Shown piece after piece: positions 4,296 through 13,100 of a stretch of DNA of 21,414 nt. Where the stretch lies: the NCBI GenBank assembly GCA_024626585.2, contig JANKJI020000002.1, positions 63,153,506-63,174,919 on the forward strand, in the 5' to 3' direction. This DNA comes from Ginkgo biloba (lineage: Eukaryota; Plantae; Ginkgophyta). A program made the translations under genes and the position numbers. Under the pieces are notes generated by a model, which did no database searches, was not told the DNA's origin, and worked only from the letters and a program-made list of their open reading frames with translations. Numbering within the stretch: the stretch's first letter is position 1; the number at the start of each line of letters is the position of its first letter.

Positions 4296-5283
4296 NNNNN
4301 NNNNNNNNNNNNNNNNNNNNNNNNNNNNNNNNNNNNNNNNNNNNNNNNNNNNNNNNNNNNNNNNNNNNNNNNNNNNNNNNNNNNNNNNNNNNNNNNNNNN
4401 NNNNNNNNNNNNNNNNNNNNNNNNNNNNNNNNNNNNNNNNNNNNNNNNNNNNNNNNNNNNNNNNNNNNNNNNNNNNNNNNNNNNNNNNNNNNNNNNNNNN
4501 NNNNNNNNNNNNNNNNNNNNNNNNNNNNNNNNNNNNNNNNNNNNNNNNNNNNNNNNNNNNNNNNNNNNNNNNNNNNNNNNNNNNNNNNNNNNNNNNNNNN
4601 NNNNNNNNNNNNNNNNNNNNNNNNNNNNNNNNNNNNNNNNNNNNNNNNNNNNNNNNNNNNNNNNNNNNNNNNNNNNNNNNNNNNNNNNNNNNNNNNNNNN
4701 NNNNNNNNNNNNNNNNNNNNNNNNNNNNNNNNNNNNNNNNNNNNNNNNNNNNNNNNNNNNNNNNNNNNNNNNNNNNNNNNNNNNNNNNNNNNNNNNNNNN
4801 NNNNNNNNNNNNNNNNNNNNNNNNNNNNNTAATTTCTTAGTCACATCACATTACTTAAGGGGCTAGTGATGGGAGAAAGTTCCCAATCCCTCATGCTAAA
4901 TTTTTTTCAAGAGACTATGGATGATGTGACTTCATCATAATTAAAGAAATATGTTAAAGAAATCGCTAAGTTCCTCTAAAATTATCGAAGCGAAGAACTA
5001 ACACACTATTCAAATAAATAAAAGGAAGAACATGCATGGCGACCACAAATTAAAAACCCTCTTTCCTAATTGGTAATGGCTTCTTATTAGATGACGAGAA
5101 AACATTTTTTTAGAGAGGATTCTAATTTTATGCCCAAATAATAAAAAAAATTGTCTTGATGTGACACCTCTCTTCTCATTTTTAGGGAGCTCGGAGCTCC
5201 ATCTCCCATGTGACCAATCTGTTACACTAAATATCCGAATTGAGGCCAGCAAGCCAGTCAAGTGCCAAAAAGTCTTTTCACTA

Positions 5284-5301
5284 CTCTCTCTCTCTCTCTC
5301 T
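5284..5301 (+). repeat. (CT)9 microsatellite / Y-patch in the putative promoter-5'UTR
   Basis: Read directly. CT/GA tracts are common near plant transcription starts. It lies about 260 bp upstream of the ATG at 5559. Confidence 0.85.
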
Positions 5302-5440
5302 TCTCCCAACAAACAAACAACCCCATTCTATTCCTTCACACAGGAAATACCACAAACATGCAGCTGAAGGAGTGCATCGACTGCTTCCTCCCTTAACATA
5401 TTTCCATCTATTTTTCTTCCTTTTTTTCTCAAGAATTTCC

Positions 5441-5520
5441 TCGCCAAAATCACCGCCAATCCCTGGAAACGCATTTTAGCAGGACCGCGGAGTTTCTCCC
5501 CGCCAAATTTGGAGGCGGAA
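5441..5520 (-). promoter_or_regulatory. Cluster of E2F-type cis-elements (WTTSSCSS) in a CpG-rich patch upstream of the ATG
   Basis: ccgccaat at 5453-5460 (= ATTGGCGG on the minus strand) and ccgccaaa at 5500-5507 (= TTTGGCGG) fit the plant E2F consensus. There is a near-match tcgccaaa at 5441-5448. CpG is locally retained, unlike the flanking repeats. Confidence 0.55.
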
Positions 5521-5558
5521 CGATCCCATTTTCGCTATAATTCATCAACTTTTGCAGC

Positions 5559-5570
5559 ATGGAAGAAGAT
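5559..5570 (+). CDS. Putative first coding exon (MEED), phase-0 donor
   Basis: gcagcATGG start context, then ATG GAA GAA GAT|gtaag. A 92-nt intron ending tgcag at 5662 joins in frame to the next exon. Confidence 0.6.
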
Positions 5571-5662
5571 GTAAGATAACTTGAGCCAGGTTATTGGATT
5601 GCTCTTCCGGTTAGGATACAGATTTAATGTTTATATATTTCATGGGTTTCTGTTAAATGCAG

Positions 5663-5851
5663 GGTAAAGAATGCCGGGAAGACGATACAATACCTGCTTT
5701 TGAGAGCTTTGTAACGGAAAATGACGAAGGGAATCAAGCCGAGGAGCAGCAGTGTGGCACGATTGCATCAAGATTGACGGATTCCGTGCCGTCTCCTGTG
5801 AATAAAGAGCCTCATTTCTGTGGCAACGAAACGGGATTGGATTGGAACCAA
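5663..5851 (+). CDS. Putative exon 2, 63 aa acidic segment of unknown family (GKECREDDT...GLDWNQ)
   Basis: Acceptor aaatgcag|GGT and donor CAA|gtaag. 189 nt, open, phase 0 at both ends, and GC-richer than its flanks. Confidence 0.6.
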
Positions 5852-5919
5852 GTAAGCTCTTTGGTTGGATGCAATTTTAATGCTTTTGAATGTTGATTGA
5901 AATCCGAGCTTTGGGTGCC

Positions 5920-6001
5920 TTGCTTGGGTTTAGGGCCAATTCCCACAGCTGGTTATGTTAAGGTTATTTTCAGTGGTAATAATGGGCCAAATGAACCGTC
6001 T
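5920..6001. repeat. Outlying copy of the intronic fold-back repeat (truncated by the gap)
   Basis: acagctggttatgttaaggttattttcagtgg...ggccaaatga matches the units at 8258 and 8613. Confidence 0.75.
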
Positions 6002-6426
6002 NNNNNNNNNNNNNNNNNNNNNNNNNNNNNNNNNNNNNNNNNNNNNNNNNNNNNNNNNNNNNNNNNNNNNNNNNNNNNNNNNNNNNNNNNNNNNNNNNNN
6101 NTAATATAATAGAGTATTAAATAACAGAGTATATATTATGCATAGAAGTTATATAATATATTATATAATGGTGTATCTATTCTATATAACTAAAATAATT
6201 GGCATTTTCAGCCCCCCCCCCCAACCAAACTGGAAAGAAAAACAAAATAAATTCAATTTTTGGGCCCACAACCAAAAATGATTTTGCGTCCAAAAATGAT
6301 TTTAAAAACAAATGTATTCAAAAGATTTTATGTCTAGAAATGATTAAACAAGATTAAATGTGATGTTATGATCTCGCATGGCTCTAATGAGGTCATGTGA
6401 GTGAAGGAGCAAACCTGAAATAGCAG

Positions 6427-6636
6427 ATGAACAAACCAATAGATGAATTGTGATGTTCATCACATTTTAGGGAGGATAGTTGAATTCTGTAACCTGTATT
6501 GTAGTTTGGAAATATGAACAAACCAACAAATGAATTGTGATGTTCATGGAGGATAGATGAATTATGAATTTAAAAATTCAAAAAAAAAGAAGTTAAAAGT
6601 TCCAATTCTGTAACCTGTACTGCAATTTGGAAATAT
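6427..6636. repeat. Local tandem duplication, first unit 87 bp, second copy with indels
   Basis: atgaacaaaccaa.a.atgaattgtgatgttcat at 6427 and 6514. aattctgtaacctgta.tg.a.tttggaaatat occurs twice. Confidence 0.8.
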
Positions 6637-6768
6637 ATAAGCCAGAAAGTATAGCATAATCAATTTCAATTTGTTAGGCAAATTTTTAAAATTTCTGTTT
6701 ATTTTTGCAGATGAATTTAGAAATTATTTTTCAGTACTTGTATTTTTATAATAATTGCTTTCTTGCAG

Positions 6769-6825
6769 TATGAATATGAATGGATGGGAAGTCATGATAG
6801 CCATTAGATTCAACACTGCCATTAG
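6769..6825 (+). other. Possible 57-nt cassette/cryptic exon (stop-containing in the frame of the flanking exons)
   Basis: Acceptor tgctttcttgcag| and donor AG|gtatg. Phase-0 reading is YEYEWMGSHDSH*IQHCH*. Only the +1 frame is open. Confidence 0.3.
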
Positions 6826-7754
6826 GTATGTGGCAAACTTATTACAAATTATATTATTTTGATAATTAGAAAGGGTGGTTTGTGTGCAATTTTAAAGAAC
6901 AAAACATTTGATTTTTTTTTCTATTTCAACATTTACACTTTTATGAAAGCAAGACTTCCTTTGGTGTTTTCTGCCTTTATCAAGTTTTAATTGGATAGTT
7001 TCAATTGGTATGCCCCTTAAGGCCATTTCCCACTAAGGAATAATGCAAATTAGTTTAAATTACTATTGTAGTTGAATTATTTGTAGCTTTGCACTATATA
7101 CGAGTGAATGAATATTATGTAATGTAACAATAATTATAATGTAAGTTACATTGATTTCCACTAGATTCATTTTTTTATCGTCGGCTTGGCTTTAATTAAG
7201 TTTGCAAGATATTTATTTGAAGTACCATCAAACTTACCTGTATCAATGACTAAGTTGTTTGGCACACACCCATATCTCCTTATAGATCAGTTAGCCTTGT
7301 AACTTCCCAAAAGTACCTTCTTTAACAAGCCACTGAGTCTCTTACCATAATATGTTGTTAAACTAAAAATAAGTCAAACTGATTAATTTAATATTATGCT
7401 CAGTAGGAATTGAATTAAAATACTAACTAATAATTTTCTAAAATGCCCGACAACAAGGAACCAAAAACATGAGAACATAGTTTAAAGATGCCTTAATTTG
7501 TAGAGAAGATATGTGTTGTCTATTTGGTCCACTTTTCACCATTCTGTAAATATAATTAAATTTGATAGTGCTTATTTGCCATTTCGCACTGAATTTTATT
7601 AAGTGATTCTGTTAAGCACAATTCATAATAATTCTGATTAAGTTGTAGAAATTCTGATTCTTTTTTAAAGTACTTGTGGAGGTACTTTAAGGAATTTGTT
7701 GCTTTCTATTTTAATTGACTCTGACTGAGAATACTTATTGTAATTTATTGGAGA

Positions 7755-7840
7755 AGCAGGTGAGCATGAAGCAGCGTTAAGAATAATGTGCCAAATGAGT
7801 CATTTGTTCCACTATTGCTGAAATTTAGTCGAACACGTGG
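7755..7840. repeat. Outlying copy of the fold-back repeat
   Basis: ataatgtgccaaatgagtcatttgttccactattgctgaaatttagtcgaaca aligns with the unit core and 3' arm. Confidence 0.7.
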
Positions 7841-8129
7841 TTCTGTTATAATTTTTTTAGTAATAATAATAACGTGCTATTGATATTCAGTCTAATAGTA
7901 TTACATACCCTCGGCACAATAAGATCTATCCACTTCTTACCTTTTGCTGGGTTCTTTCCCTGATTCATTGGTTGAAGCCAAAACACCACCGCTTTGAGCT
8001 AGTATCCTGGCAAGGACCCAAAAAAAAGGAACTTGGTTAGATAGAACAGATGTAAATATGTTCTTAACTCAAAGAGCTGGCTTGGATTTACTTATTTTAG
8101 TGGCACATTTCAAAGTTTTATGGACAACC

Positions 8130-8885
8130 TTTGTTACAGTTATATATTGTAATCAACTTCAGCAATACTAATGTGCTAAATTACTCATCGGTCATTGTAT
8201 AGATATCTGATGTTATATAACCAGAAATGCAAATTGCTTTCCTTTAGAGTGACTTAGACAGCTGGTCATGTGAAAGTGAATTTCAGTGACACTGATATGC
8301 CAAATGACTCATCTGTCCCACCGTCATTGAAATTCAGGAACAGAACCTGAGAAACCATCATTGCAAATTACCTTGTTTTAGAGTGGATTCTCACAACTAC
8401 TTATGTTGTAAATTGCAATATGTATAAAGTGTAACATGATCCATTTTTCCTACTATTAAGGAAATTCTGTCTAGCATAGCCATCCCAGTTGGTTATGTTA
8501 AAACGAATTTCAGGATCAATTATGTGCTGAAGGATGTGTCTGTCCCGCAATTAGTGAAATTCTGTCTGATACAAGTACCAACTGGAATTAACTTGCTTTA
8601 GAGCAAATTTTAACAGCTGGTTATGTTCAACTAAGTTTCGTTAATTATAAATTACCACATGATCCATCTTTCTCGCAATTAGGGGATTTTAGTCTAACAG
8701 AATGAATGAGCACCAAGAATTACCTTGCTCTGGGGTGTTTTCTCAAAGTTCATAATGCTAAAGCAAAGTTTCAGGAACAGCAGTGTGCCAAATGAGTCTT
8801 CTGCTTCACCATCATTGAAATCTAGTCTGACATAACCTGCAGTGCAAGTCGTTTGCTCTAGCGTGATTTTTTGTAACTGGTTCAA
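8130..8885. repeat. Diverged tandem array of about 6-7 units (~90-135 bp), each carrying imperfect ~28-bp inverted arms
   Basis: Unit starts near 8135, 8258, 8393, 8485, 8613, 8745 and 8873 (partial). Approximate consensus: aattaccttgctttagag...acagctggttatgttaaactgaatttcagtga...tgccaaatgactcatctgtccc...tcattgaaattcagtctaacataacc. The 3' arm is the reverse complement of the 5' arm. Confidence 0.8.
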
Positions 8886-9679
8886 TATAAAAATGTATTT
8901 AGTAGAAATGTAGATAAAGTATTTGACCAATTTCCCTATATGAGATATTATACTATAGTTAATATTATTCAATACATATTCTTTTGATAGTTTATATATT
9001 ATTCACTAATTAATTTTGAATCATATTCATCATTATTATTGAATTGGTCACACTTAATTTATTAATGTAATTTATGAGGGTGTGGTGAGATGGACATGTT
9101 CTTTTTCTTAATCATATAATATCAATATAGATTAGCCAATATATTATGTGGCTATAATAAAAGTTGCTTTTGCACTTATATATAGGACACAATTGTTTAG
9201 ATTTTTATAAATATTAACTTTATAGTTTTATTTTTATGAGATGTTCATGAATGTTTCTTTTTATATATTCTTAGTCCATGTCAAAGGCATGAAACTATAA
9301 TATTTTGTTTTATATTTATGTATTTATTTATTCTTAAAAAGTCTTCTCTTAATTATATTTTATATTGCCTCATTAGGATACATTAGTCATTGATATGTTT
9401 TGCATAAGATTTGAATATTTTCCAATGTCATAAAAGTTATTTTTCTTCACCACTTTCCTAATGGCTAATATGTCCTCCAATTTATCCTAATTTGTTTCAA
9501 CCAACCAAATTATTTATTGTCTTGTGTAACTTTAGGTTTATAATGTTTTATCAAATCTTTGTATTTTTATAGGTATCATAAGTTTTATATTACCATTTAT
9601 TTTTAATCTAATTAGTGTCTTGTCAATGATTACACAATTTATGGTTTAGCTTAGACCCTCAAGGGTTCATGTATGACAG

Positions 9680-9793
9680 CATGTGGAGCATAGAGTTGAT
9701 TTCACAATTGGGTCTGATAGTGGGATTAGCATAGATGCTGACAAACTTCAACAGCACCAAATCAATGCACGTGATTTTTTCGTTCCTACACAA
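9680..9793 (+). CDS. TEB: DNA polymerase theta (TEBICHI/POLQ-like) polymerase-domain exon, HVEHRVDF...QINARDFFVPTQ
   Basis: gacag|CAT ... CAA|gtaag, 114 nt, phase 0/0. The peptide matches the plant TEBICHI segment 'xVEHxVEF...INARDFFVPTQ' that precedes motif A. Too short for the ORF track. Confidence 0.88.
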
Positions 9794-9895
9794 GTAAGTT
9801 CCAGTATGCCTCCTTTCTTGCAGTCTTTGCATTTTTTAAATATTCACTGATTTAATGTCCCTAATTCGTTCCTCTGTATTGAAATGTGACTGCAG

Positions 9896-10248
9896 GAAAG
9901 TTGGTTGTTGATGTCTGCAGACTATTCCCAAATAGAACTACGCTTGATGGCTCATTTTTCTGAAGATGCTTCATTACTTGGTCTTCTCAGGAAGCCAGAT
10001 GGTGATCTTTTCCGGATGATTGCAGCAAGATGGACAGAACAAAATGAATCTGCAATAACTGAGAAGCAAAGAGATCAAACCAAAAAGTTAATATATGGAA
10101 TTCTGTATGGCATGGGTGTTAACACCTTGGCTGAGCACCTAGAATGCAGTGTAGCTGAAGCTGCTGAGAGATATAATCGTTTCAAGAGCGCCTTTCCTGG
10201 TGTTTCATCGTGGCTTCATCAGGCAGTTGAGAGATGCCGCCAAAAAGG
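9896..10248 (+). CDS. TEB: DNA polymerase theta (TEBICHI/POLQ-like) exon with family-A motifs A and B
   Basis: tgcag|GAA AGT TGG ... CAA AAA GG|gtatg, 353 nt, no stops. It encodes ESWLLMSADYSQIELRLMAHFS (motif A with the catalytic Asp) and RDQTKKLIYGILYGMG (motif B, with Tyr as in Pol theta, unlike the KMLNFSIAYG type of plant organellar PolI). The ORF-track extension past 10248 is intron read-through. Confidence 0.93.
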
Positions 10249-10352
10249 GTATGCTTTCAGCTTGTTATATCAACAGGGTTCATGTTTTTGGTATGCAATG
10301 AACTTTCTACAGATATCGCATCATGGGCACTTGCTAATTGTCTATTTAAAAG

Positions 10353-10458
10353 TATGCTGAATCTTCTTTGTGTTGTTAAAGTATTTCTACAAAGGATATT
10401 GACTATGCTGAATCTTGTTTGTGTCGTTAAAGTATATCTACAAAGGATATTGACTATG
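10353..10458. repeat. 51-bp direct tandem duplication (2 copies, 3 mismatches)
   Basis: tatgctgaatctt(c/g)tttgtgt(t/c)gttaaagtat(t/a)tctacaaaggatattgac at 10353 and 10404. Confidence 0.95.
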
Positions 10459-10799
10459 TCTAGGATACTAAATGATGTAAAAAGTGTTTTAATAGCTGCA
10501 AAGCAGGGGATGATGTGAATTATNNNNNNNNNNNNNNNNNNNNNNNNNNNNNNNNNNNNNNNNNNNNNNNNNNNNNNNNNNNNNNNNNNNNNNNNNNNNN
10601 NNNNNNNNNNNNNNNNNNNNNNNAAGAAAGCCTATCACCGAATTAAAGGTTGGGGTGGTGGAAAATCTACAAGAAAAGATGCAAATCATACAACTTGATC
10701 ACATTCAACCCGCACAGGTTCTCTCTGTTCCTTCTTCCCCTTCCTCTAAAAAAATCTCTCCCATTCCTCTCATATAAAAATATTGAAGAATAGTTAAAC

Positions 10800-13100
10800 A
10801 TGATGTGCAAATTGTGACAAAAGGAAAGTGTAAATGAGTACAATCAAAATGTTCTTGCGACTCTCCTTCATGCTAGGAGATCTATTAGTTAATGTGTAGG
10901 TTTGATTTACATGAATGGACTACATGAAGAATACAAAGAGGATGTTAGAGCTCAAATAGAGCAATGAAGCTAGCATTCTCCTTGGAAAAAGGACCATGGC
11001 AACGAGAAGAAGGAAGACAATTTAAGATGACAGATTGCAAAAATGTAGTTGGATCTTTCCACTCAAAAGCGAAGGCAATGAGTCCTCTAGAATTGAGTCA
11101 CGAGGACATTGATTGACATCGTGAGATATGGAAGATTGCCACAAAATGAATAATGTTATTGGTGTTGAGAACCCTGGGGCAAAAAGTGCAAAAGTCAAGC
11201 TATAAAGCACACATATTCCTTTCTTATGTTGGAAGACACACAAGACAACGAGGGTTGAAGAGGAATTCAAACTGATGTTGAAATTGATAATGAAGACCCC
11301 AATAGAAGAGAAGTTGACCTTTGTTTTAAGATGTCACTATTGGTTGCCATGGGATTGGTTTAATATGGTACATTAAAGTTTCAAGGATTCATTAAGACAG
11401 AAAAGACAATAATACAAGTAGACTTTGGAAGTTCTCATGACTTCATTGACAAGAGAGTAGCGAAAAGACTTGCCTTATTTTTGGAACAAAAAAATGTCAT
11501 GTACTGAAGGAGACTTTTTTTTGCAAAGTAATTTCCATATAGTCCCAATAGGAGGTGTTGATATCATTTGGGTATCCAATGGTTGATGCACTAGGAGAAA
11601 TCAAATTTGATTCTAACAATTTGACATGTTGTTTTGGCATAATGATGGAGGAGTATACATTAAGTTTTGGCATAATGATGAAGAAGTTTCATTGCAAGGC
11701 TTTGTACCACTTCGTGTAAATGGGAAAAGCTAGCCAAAAAAATCCCAAAGCATGGTGTAGCAACTATTTCATTTGGAGGCTCAAGAAGCAAATTTAGACA
11801 AGCAAGAAATTAATTTAGAAGGTGAAATTAAGCAAGTTTTTCAAGAGTATATAAATGTTTTTTTAAAAGCCTAGTGGATTGCCACTAGATAGGGGCATGG
11901 AGCACATCCTTGAGCTATAGATGGGTACAAAATCTATTATGAAGAAGTCATGTCGACACACTTATCATCATAAGAAGGGATTGAGATGATTGTGTGAGAA
12001 CTTCTTGAGCAAGGCATTATCACACATAGTAAGTTACCCTTTGTAGCACCAATTATCTTAGTACGAAAGAAGGATAGATCCTCTCAAATGCATGTGGATT
12101 ATTGGGCTATAAACAAGCTTGTTGTAAAGAATCAATATTCCATCCCAAGAATCAACAAGTTATTGGATGAGCTACATAGTGCTAAGTATATTTTGAAGAT
12201 CAATATTTGCTTGGGCTTTTATCAAATTTGCATAAGGAAGGAAGGTATTCATAAGATTGCCTTCAATACACATGAGGGTCATTATGAATTCAGAGTAATG
12301 TCGTTTGGCCTTGCAAACACGAGCTATTTTCCAAGCAACAATGAACATGTAATGTCTCTTTCCTTATGAAAGTTAGTCTTGGCATTCCTTGATGACATTC
12401 TTATCTATAGCAAAATTTGGGAAGAACATATTAAACACTTGAGAATGGCTCTACACGTGCTACAAGACAATCAACTATATACCGNNNNNNNNNNATGAAT
12501 TGAAACGCAGTTTTAGGAAGAAGGAAATGGGATCTTTGGCCCACTGTTAATTAGGAGCAAAAGTTGACCCTATGATCCAAGCAAATATTGGTTGGCCTAC
12601 ACCAACAAATATATCTCAATTTAAGAGTTTTTTTAGACTAACATGTTACTATTGCACATTTGCCTAACACTATTCATAGATTACCTCCATCATCACAAAT
12701 ATACTAAAATGGGAAGCTCTTTACTAGAATCAGGGGCAGAAATTTATTTTTAACAACTTAAGTATGTCATGACAATGCTTCCAATCTTAGCAACACTAGA
12801 TTTGAAATAGAATTTTATTGCAGAGTGTGATGCATCTGGTATAGGTTTAGGAATTGTCCTAATGGATGTCCAATTACTTTTGAGAGCCACAAATTTGAAG
12901 GACAAGGAAAGAAGCATGTTGACTTGCGGTAAGGAAATAATGACAATTGTGCATGCTTGGGGAAAATGGAGGCAAAATCTATTGGGAAGCAATTTTCTAA
13001 TTTAAACAGATTACAACCACCTTCAATATTTCTTACATCAACAAAGCTCGTCACCTTCTTAGCAAAAATAGGTCAATAAGGTCCAAGATTTTGACTTCGA
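10800..13100 (+). mobile_element. Degenerate Ty3/Gypsy retrotransposon internal region (gag end, protease, RT, RNase H)
   Basis: Protease-like VDFGSSHDFID (11418-11450). RT: PFVAPIILVRKKD..HVDYWAINK..IAFNTHEGHYEFRVMSFGLAN..AFLDDILIYS (FLDD at 12385-12396). RNase H: ECDASGIGLG (from 12823) ..KWRQNLLG..TDY. The PR-RT-RH order is Gypsy. There are many stops and frameshifts. Confidence 0.92.
11631..11693. repeat. 33-bp tandem duplication inside the Gypsy remnant
   Basis: gttttggcataatgatgga/aag at 11631 and 11664. Confidence 0.8.

Follow-up and report, generated by a model that had tools for sequence, protein, structure and literature searches.

The tandem array at 8107-8849 of the Ginkgo biloba window (the whole 21,414-nt stretch of DNA analysed here) is probably a neutrally decaying tandem repeat of an ancestral palindromic unit. 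Its six head-to-tail units of ~125 nt, with a period of 105-134 nt, descend from a near-perfect palindrome of ~97 nt and a spacer of ~30 nt; the hairpins of the individual units are not maintained, and they have eroded at the rate expected without selection. The first-pass annotation, made from the sequence alone, had preferred a polycistronic miRNA or siRNA precursor or a structured RNA element, and had named as its alternative an old array built in tandem from a small inverted-repeat element. The alternative fits the data better, and the preferred reading is not borne out by the arm comparison, the covariation analysis, the RNAalifold consensus, the folding energies or the Rfam scan presented below.

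That the window carries tandem fold-back units is supported by blastn, by gapless repeat families, and by a search with a profile of the unit. Because the profile was made from the units themselves its nhmmer scores are circular, but single-unit blastn independently recovers the same copies, with E values from 1e-8 to 5e-2. The profile identifies the six array units and two outlying copies, and beyond these there are no significant plus-strand matches to it in the window; the significant minus-strand matches are the palindromic units read in reverse. Within the 21.4-kb window, unit copies are confined to 5920-8885 and all have the plus orientation. The copies are as follows.

5920-6001, plus strand: outlying unit copy with spacer, 5' arm and centre, ending at the 100-N scaffold gap 6002-6101
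7741-7848, plus strand: solo unit copy ~260 nt upstream of the array, found by blastn and scoring 66 bits with nhmmer
8107-8234, plus strand: unit U0, which has decayed furthest (divergence from the consensus core ~33%)
8232-8355, plus strand: unit U1, with a 14-nt inner stem (8277-8290 / 8323-8336) and the centre ATGACTCAT at 8304-8312
8366-8484, plus strand: unit U2, whose nearest unit is U4 (identity 68-69%)
8480-8589, plus strand: unit U3, without most of the spacer, with an outer stem (8482-8493 / 8577-8588) and an inner stem (8505-8512 / 8555-8562)
8587-8709, plus strand: unit U4, carrying the taatt/aatta inner-stem variant
8718-8849, plus strand: unit U5, whose 3' arm at 8817-8843 reads TAGYVRLDF on the minus strand
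8853-8884, plus strand: possible remnant of a further spacer and 5' arm start at the array end (8853-8869 is 82% identical to 8725-8741; the profile match is non-significant, nhmmer E 0.34)

Each unit is laid out as a ~30-nt spacer with TTGCTTTAGAG, a 5' arm reading CAGCTGGTTATGT...GAATTTCAG, the centre GTGCCAAATGA(C/G)TCATCTGTCCC, and a 3' arm reverse-complementary to the 5' arm. The gapless repeat families formed by the units are 39-77 nt long, share 60-79% identity and recur at intervals of 124-134 and 220-261 nt, and the 14-mer CAGCTGGTTATGTT has nine matches at three or fewer mismatches (2.07 expected; 0 of 100 shuffles have as many). The array thus has the homologous head-to-tail units and regular period of a minisatellite. 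Of the "6-7 units" first proposed, the tandem arrangement stands, and the count becomes six array units of 105-134 nt plus the two outlying copies. Tandem Repeats Finder returns no row for the array because the units are too diverged: pairwise identity of the aligned units is 44-70% and the mean Jukes-Cantor distance is 0.67, and the array is therefore old. Spacer, arms and centre have decayed to a similar extent (48-63% pairwise identity), with the centre slightly better kept than the arms (63% vs 51-57%), a difference that counts against neutral decay. U1 resembles U3 and U5, and this likeness, with that of U2 to U4, suggests that a two-unit block may have been duplicated during amplification. 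We note also that the spacers at 8232-8250, 8366-8385, 8586-8604 and 8718-8735 all resemble splice sites, with the acceptor-like motif TTGCTTTAG|AG when read on the plus strand and the donor-like motif AAG|GTAATT when read on the minus strand.

The two outlying copies differ in what they preserve. The solo copy at 7741-7848 has a well-kept centre (90% identity to the consensus) and a badly decayed 5' arm (56%). The copy at 5920-6001 lies 67 nt 3' of the exon 2 donor of the upstream gene; it matches unit 1 at 75% over 57 nt (blastn, E 1e-7) and 8234-8314 at 70.7% over 82 nt, and it scores 62.5 bits with nhmmer. Exons of the two neighbouring genes may lie within the gap at 6002-6101, which opens inside this unit. 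A contig from RNA run X5 goes past 6001, and the 30 letters beyond it read as the unit 3' arm.

The majority consensus of the unit alignment (A1) forms a single long hairpin, at -34.1 kcal/mol on the plus strand and -41.7 kcal/mol on the minus strand (MFEI 0.90 and 1.10). Its arms share 36 paired positions, 28 of them in the outer helix, around the centre ATGA(C/G)TCAT. Across the units, 68.8% of the cells of this 36-pair hairpin form a standard pair, compared with 31-45% when the 3' partner is slid by one to three columns, so the fold-back register is real. The stems from which the array had been recognized are all present: 8277-8290 pairs with 8323-8336 over 14 nt (13 Watson-Crick pairs and one G-T), the stem quoted as 8485-8493 / 8577-8585 extends to 12 nt at 92% (8482-8493 / 8577-8588), and gaatttca at 8505-8512 pairs with tgaaattc at 8555-8562. 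The 28-position outer helix amounts to terminal inverted repeats, as in a MITE or other small TIR element. The palindromic centre, which resembles a bZIP site, is perfect in only two of the eight copies. The symmetry remarked upon in the open reading frames is likewise present: TAGYVKVIFS on the plus strand, in the copy at 5946, is the 5' arm, and TAGYVRLDFN on the minus strand (8817-8843) is the reverse complement of the 3' arm. These mirror peptides are a by-product of the palindrome and no sign of coding.

It had also been argued that the nearly fixed distance from unit start to 3' arm may point to conserved length and pairing. Selection is not needed to account for it: most of the differences between units are substitutions, as is evident from the gapless 77-nt family.

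Whether the hairpins have been maintained was addressed in several ways. The units fold far more weakly than their consensus, with energies of -12 to -32 kcal/mol and MFEI values of 0.36-0.69. Each unit fold was compared with 200 dinucleotide shuffles. In 11 of the 14, |z| is < 1.7, and only one, that of 8478-8592 (U3) on the minus strand, is clearly better than the shuffles. The z scores on the plus and minus strands are +0.19 and +0.73 for U0, -0.57 and +0.37 for U2, -0.01 and +0.55 for U4, and +1.35 and -1.68 for U5. U1 folds at -24.5 kcal/mol (plus, z -0.83) and -32.2 kcal/mol (minus, z -1.65), and U3 at -26.9 kcal/mol (plus, z -1.70, MFEI 0.60) and -30.9 kcal/mol (minus, z -3.41, equalled by 0 of 200 shuffles, MFEI 0.69). 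Most unit folds thus do not exceed their shuffles, and that of U3 minus, which does, is a point against neutral decay. When the consensus core is mutated in simulation at the observed divergence of 27.5%, the decayed copies have MFEs of -14.0 +/- 4.6 (plus) and -15.4 +/- 4.5 (minus), and the observed unit means are -15.9 and -17.0, respectively. Only U1 falls in the top 1-2% of the simulated copies, which again leans away from neutral decay, although it is unremarkable among 14 tests. The array folded as a whole departs from its shuffles (z -2.0 for plus and -5.1 for minus, with only 20 shuffles each), but such an excess is expected of any set of related inverted arms.

A palindrome that is only inherited can be told apart cleanly from a hairpin that is maintained by setting the pairing of arms of one unit against that of arms from different units, and the array is useful as a worked negative for this comparison. 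Under selection for pairing, compensatory changes would lift the within-unit value above the between-unit value; the two are equal. Over the 36 consensus pairs, a 5' arm pairs with its own 3' arm at 0.681 and with the 3' arms of other units at 0.680 (0.578 and 0.569 when only Watson-Crick pairs are counted), and own-arm pairing is matched or exceeded by 2373 of 5040 permutations. Covariation is similarly unexceptional. The proportion of paired cells (68.8%) is close to that in shuffles (68.1 +/- 1.4; 171 of 500 are as high), nine pairs are changed on both sides compared with 7.0 +/- 2.0 in shuffles (115 of 500 as high), and the covariation score is 0.149 compared with 0.136 (125 of 500 as high). 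RNAalifold on the unit alignment returns an empty consensus structure. The taatt/aatta variant of the unit at 8613 is present, but its reading as compensatory lacks statistical support, as it adds one or two double changes to the nine, within expectation. Covariation, arm comparison and RNAalifold alike therefore give no compensatory base-pair changes above controls, the mark of a structured RNA.

These results bear directly on the proposal of a polycistronic hairpin locus for miRNA-like or hairpin-derived small interfering RNAs, young or decaying, produced from the intron or from its own transcript, with U3, U1 and perhaps U5 minus still competent for Dicer-like processing. The ancestral unit was a hairpin of pre-miRNA size and stability, U3 minus retains its z of -3.41, and in the MFE folds of U5 minus, U1 minus, U3 minus and U4 plus the best 21-nt window leaves only three or four positions unpaired (five to nine in the other folds). 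The 2018 plant miRNA annotation guidelines reportedly ask for a stable single hairpin and a miRNA/miRNA* duplex with no more than about five mismatched positions. Unspliced RNA contigs lie on the array in three runs, and two reports describe MITE palindromes giving rise to plant MIRNA genes (PMC9641971, PMC10004981). Nonetheless, there is neither covariation nor an excess of within-unit pairing, the RNAalifold structure is empty, the MFEI is 0.36-0.69 in all units with 11 of 14 folds at |z| < 1.7, no Rfam miRNA family lies in the array, polyA reads are absent from it, and the energies fit neutral decay. We consider this proposal improbable. Its specific form, in which array RNA would be non-polyadenylated or cut from the Pol-theta-like pre-mRNA and U1, U3 and U5 minus would yield small RNAs as a decaying proto-miRNA or siRNA cluster, we regard as quite improbable.

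Searches for known RNA families agree with neutral decay of the units. No Rfam family is found at E < 0.4, and the Rfam 15 scan of 5000-10000 has no miRNA match inside 5900-8900, in keeping with the earlier remark that no known miRNA family could be recognized; ARAGORN finds no tRNA-like gene. The best snoRNA match in the array is to SNORD36 (8296-8366, minus strand, 21.3 bits, E 7.3), and falls below the gathering score of 30. Box C/D snoRNAs carry a C box (RUGAUGA), a D box (CUGA) and a short terminal stem, and an intronic cluster of such genes could be entertained from this weak match and from the AUGAUGG and AUGACGG motifs of U5 and U1 minus near the 5' stem, with CUGA near the 3' stem. 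These box-like motifs of U1 and U5 are not common to the other units, they follow from the palindrome, and a stem of ~45 bp is foreign to snoRNA architecture; with the boxes unconserved and so explained, the snoRNA reading is effectively refuted, and we give it almost no credence.

The array is directly seen to lack coding capacity, with stops in all six frames across it, and the only ORF scanned, of 92 amino acids, has non-significant Pfam matches below the cut-off (E 0.12-0.14). A different origin in coding DNA, in which the units would be pseudo-exons, decayed copies of an exon and its flanking splice sites taken from the upstream gene with exons at 5400-5853, would account for the acceptor-like tttag that precedes the 5920 copy, for its one open frame (GPIPTAGYVKVIFSGNNGPNEPS), and for the acceptor-like motif in every spacer. 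However, transcripts go from 5853 to other sequence and not to the 5920 copy, which the sampled transcripts do not use as an exon; a coding exon leaves a 97-nt palindrome unexplained; and the best Pfam match (E 0.12) is below the cut-off. A resemblance by eye between exon 2 and the unit was considered as homology and rejected (best blastn E 0.36; no nhmmer match at E up to 10). The pseudo-exon origin is accordingly very unlikely.

The array lies between two expressed genes on the plus strand.

Exons to 5570 and 5663-5853, plus strand: upstream expressed gene, with a GT..AG intron at 5571-5662
9676-9793 and 9896-10249, plus strand: exons of a Pol-theta-like family-A DNA polymerase, with a GT..AG intron (joint 9793>9896 in runs X1, X2, X5 and X24)

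The exons at 9676-10249 encode the family-A polymerase domain (Pfam DNA_pol_A, PF00476, E 1.4e-36), and the array is ~800 nt upstream of the 9676 exon in the gap-free sequence 6102-10523. The donor at 5853 splices to an exon beginning TGAGGCCATTC, and the 9676 exon is preceded by one ending CCTAATCT; both are absent from the window. Three loose-end sequences of RNA contigs have no matches in the window, which places the neighbouring exons in scaffold gaps or beyond its ends. The gaps are of 100 N at 2548, 6002, 10524, 13101, 17685 and 19350, and of 534 N at 4296. No joint from 5853 to 9676 is seen in the RNA runs, and in run X1 the contig depth of the upstream gene exons is about ten-fold that of the Pol-theta-like exons; a model of one chimeric Pol theta gene without a helicase part thus finds no support in these runs. 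The intronic placement first given to the array is reasonable, because the array is upstream of the spliced Pol-theta-like exons, and neither spliced contigs nor polyA reads fall on it. The window is AT-rich; GC is ~34% in the array and 25-29% in its flanks. The flanks of the array hold no large repeats, direct or inverted, that would point to an LTR or TIR element around it. Elsewhere in the window, a young 51-bp tandem repeat (2.1 copies, 94% identity) lies at 10353-10458, just 3' of the polymerase exon, and farther downstream, at 12088-12366 on the plus strand, a reverse-transcriptase fragment marks the remnant of a retrotransposon (Pfam RVT_1, E 1.8e-5, which does not reach the curated cut-off). 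This fragment, the AT-richness and the 100-N gaps suggest the draft assembly of a large genome of plant type.

RNA over the array is sparse. The polyA raw-read run X24 has no reads on 5901-9574, compared with a depth of ~4.7 on the polymerase exons; at equal abundance ~25 reads would be expected over the array, which is therefore present at no more than roughly a tenth of the exon level in polyA RNA. No spliced contigs use the array and there are no joints inside it. Exact unspliced contigs, at depths of 2.5-4.7, nevertheless lie on 5919-6001, 7680-7914 and most of 8057-8901, in three runs (X1, X2 and X5) from three studies, which are of uncertain library type and contain spliced cDNA. The same three runs have no contigs on 6235-6735, 7237-7403 and 8907-9574. 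A contig of run X1 is exact to 8798-8901, but its following 345 letters have no counterpart in 5400-10400, and GT stands at 8902-8903 on the plus strand; this break may be a splice donor, or a haplotype difference or presence-absence variant of an AT-rich stretch. The RNA contigs that align to 6903-7236 and 7565-7695 differ from the window at many positions and have a loose end at either side; they thus come from paralogous dispersed repeats expressed elsewhere in the genome.

That unspliced contigs sit on precisely the repeat-bearing stretches and not on the rest of the intron counts against neutral decay, and it is the only observation that keeps a small-RNA or non-coding-RNA reading alive. 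The pattern could reflect a mild GC bias at depths close to the assembly threshold, a structural variant beyond 8901, or real RNA from the array that is non-polyadenylated or stable. The last of these would be expected if 7680-8901 and the 5920 copy formed a separate non-polyadenylated non-coding RNA or an alternative non-coding exon; a related suggestion is that they form a cis-regulatory module of CAGCTG (E-box-like) and TGA(C/G)TCA (bZIP-site-like) motifs. The coincidence of X1, X2 and X5 coverage with the repeats, the departure of the X1 contig from the window at 8901 with GT next on the plus strand, the centre as the best-kept part of the unit, and the perfect ATGACTCAT and ATGAGTCAT in U1 and the 7741 copy are all consistent with these suggestions. 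Yet the heptamer is kept in only two of eight copies, the contig depth is near the assembly floor where the GC difference between array and flanks could mimic the pattern, a haplotype differing after 8901 could do so too, and there are neither joints inside the array nor polyA reads. We think such an RNA or module unlikely.

A neutrally decaying palindromic array thus remains the explanation that we favor, and we infer for it the following course. A ~125-nt unit, comprising the ~97-nt palindrome and the ~30-nt spacer, would have been amplified head to tail, probably by way of a two-unit block and through unequal exchange or replication slippage, at or near its present locus. The copies would then have diverged freely to 44-70% pairwise identity, each arm mutating independently, so that the hairpins eroded at the neutral rate. 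The array would now be non-coding and presumably functionless DNA in an intron of, or immediately upstream of, the Pol-theta-like gene, transcribed at most within unspliced precursor RNA. The source of the unit is most likely either a small inverted-repeat (MITE-like) element or a palindrome-bearing minisatellite. No target-site duplication is seen by eye at the flanks of 7741-7848 or in the array spacers, although a short one could be erased at such divergence; the unit possibly belongs to the MITE class, with neither target-site duplications nor dispersed copies seen in this window.

As it stands, the array is an unclassified, locally amplified and decayed intronic palindromic repeat that matters little in itself, and decayed intronic repeats of this kind are common in large plant genomes. 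The acceptor- and donor-like motifs of its units could mislead gene prediction. Were small RNAs to be found, it would be a modest example of the birth and death of a hairpin cluster from an amplified inverted-repeat element; and if the proto-miRNA or siRNA reading were true, the cluster would have arisen within a DNA-repair gene, from a single palindromic element amplified in tandem.

The array resembles several known systems in part. Like an ordinary intronic minisatellite, it is a local array of 100-130-nt units in non-coding genic DNA that evolves neutrally; unlike one, its unit is a near-complete palindrome and its copies are far more diverged than in arrays still turning over. It also differs from a homogenised satellite in being short (six units) and very diverged (44-70% identity). 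The two reports that document MITE-type palindromes as a source of plant MIRNA genes (PMC9641971, PMC10004981) invite a second comparison: as in the genes described there, the ancestral unit was a ~100-nt hairpin as large and as stable as a pre-miRNA, and its position was genic or intronic. Relative to those genes, however, the present copies fold poorly (MFEI 0.36-0.69) and have neither a family match nor compensatory maintenance, and the locus is a tandem cluster of seven decayed copies rather than the usual single MITE. Finally, tandem arrays and satellites are known to arise from MITEs and small inverted-repeat elements, including Xstir and miDNA4 in Xenopus and tandem-repeat-containing MITEs in bivalves (PMC12628747). 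Although neither target-site duplications nor a recognisable terminal-repeat family are seen in the Ginkgo array, it shares with those arrays (PMC12628747) a short monomer with a long inverted repeat, head-to-tail amplification, solo copies beside the array, and terminal repeats decayed to the point where the array takes on a plain tandem look.
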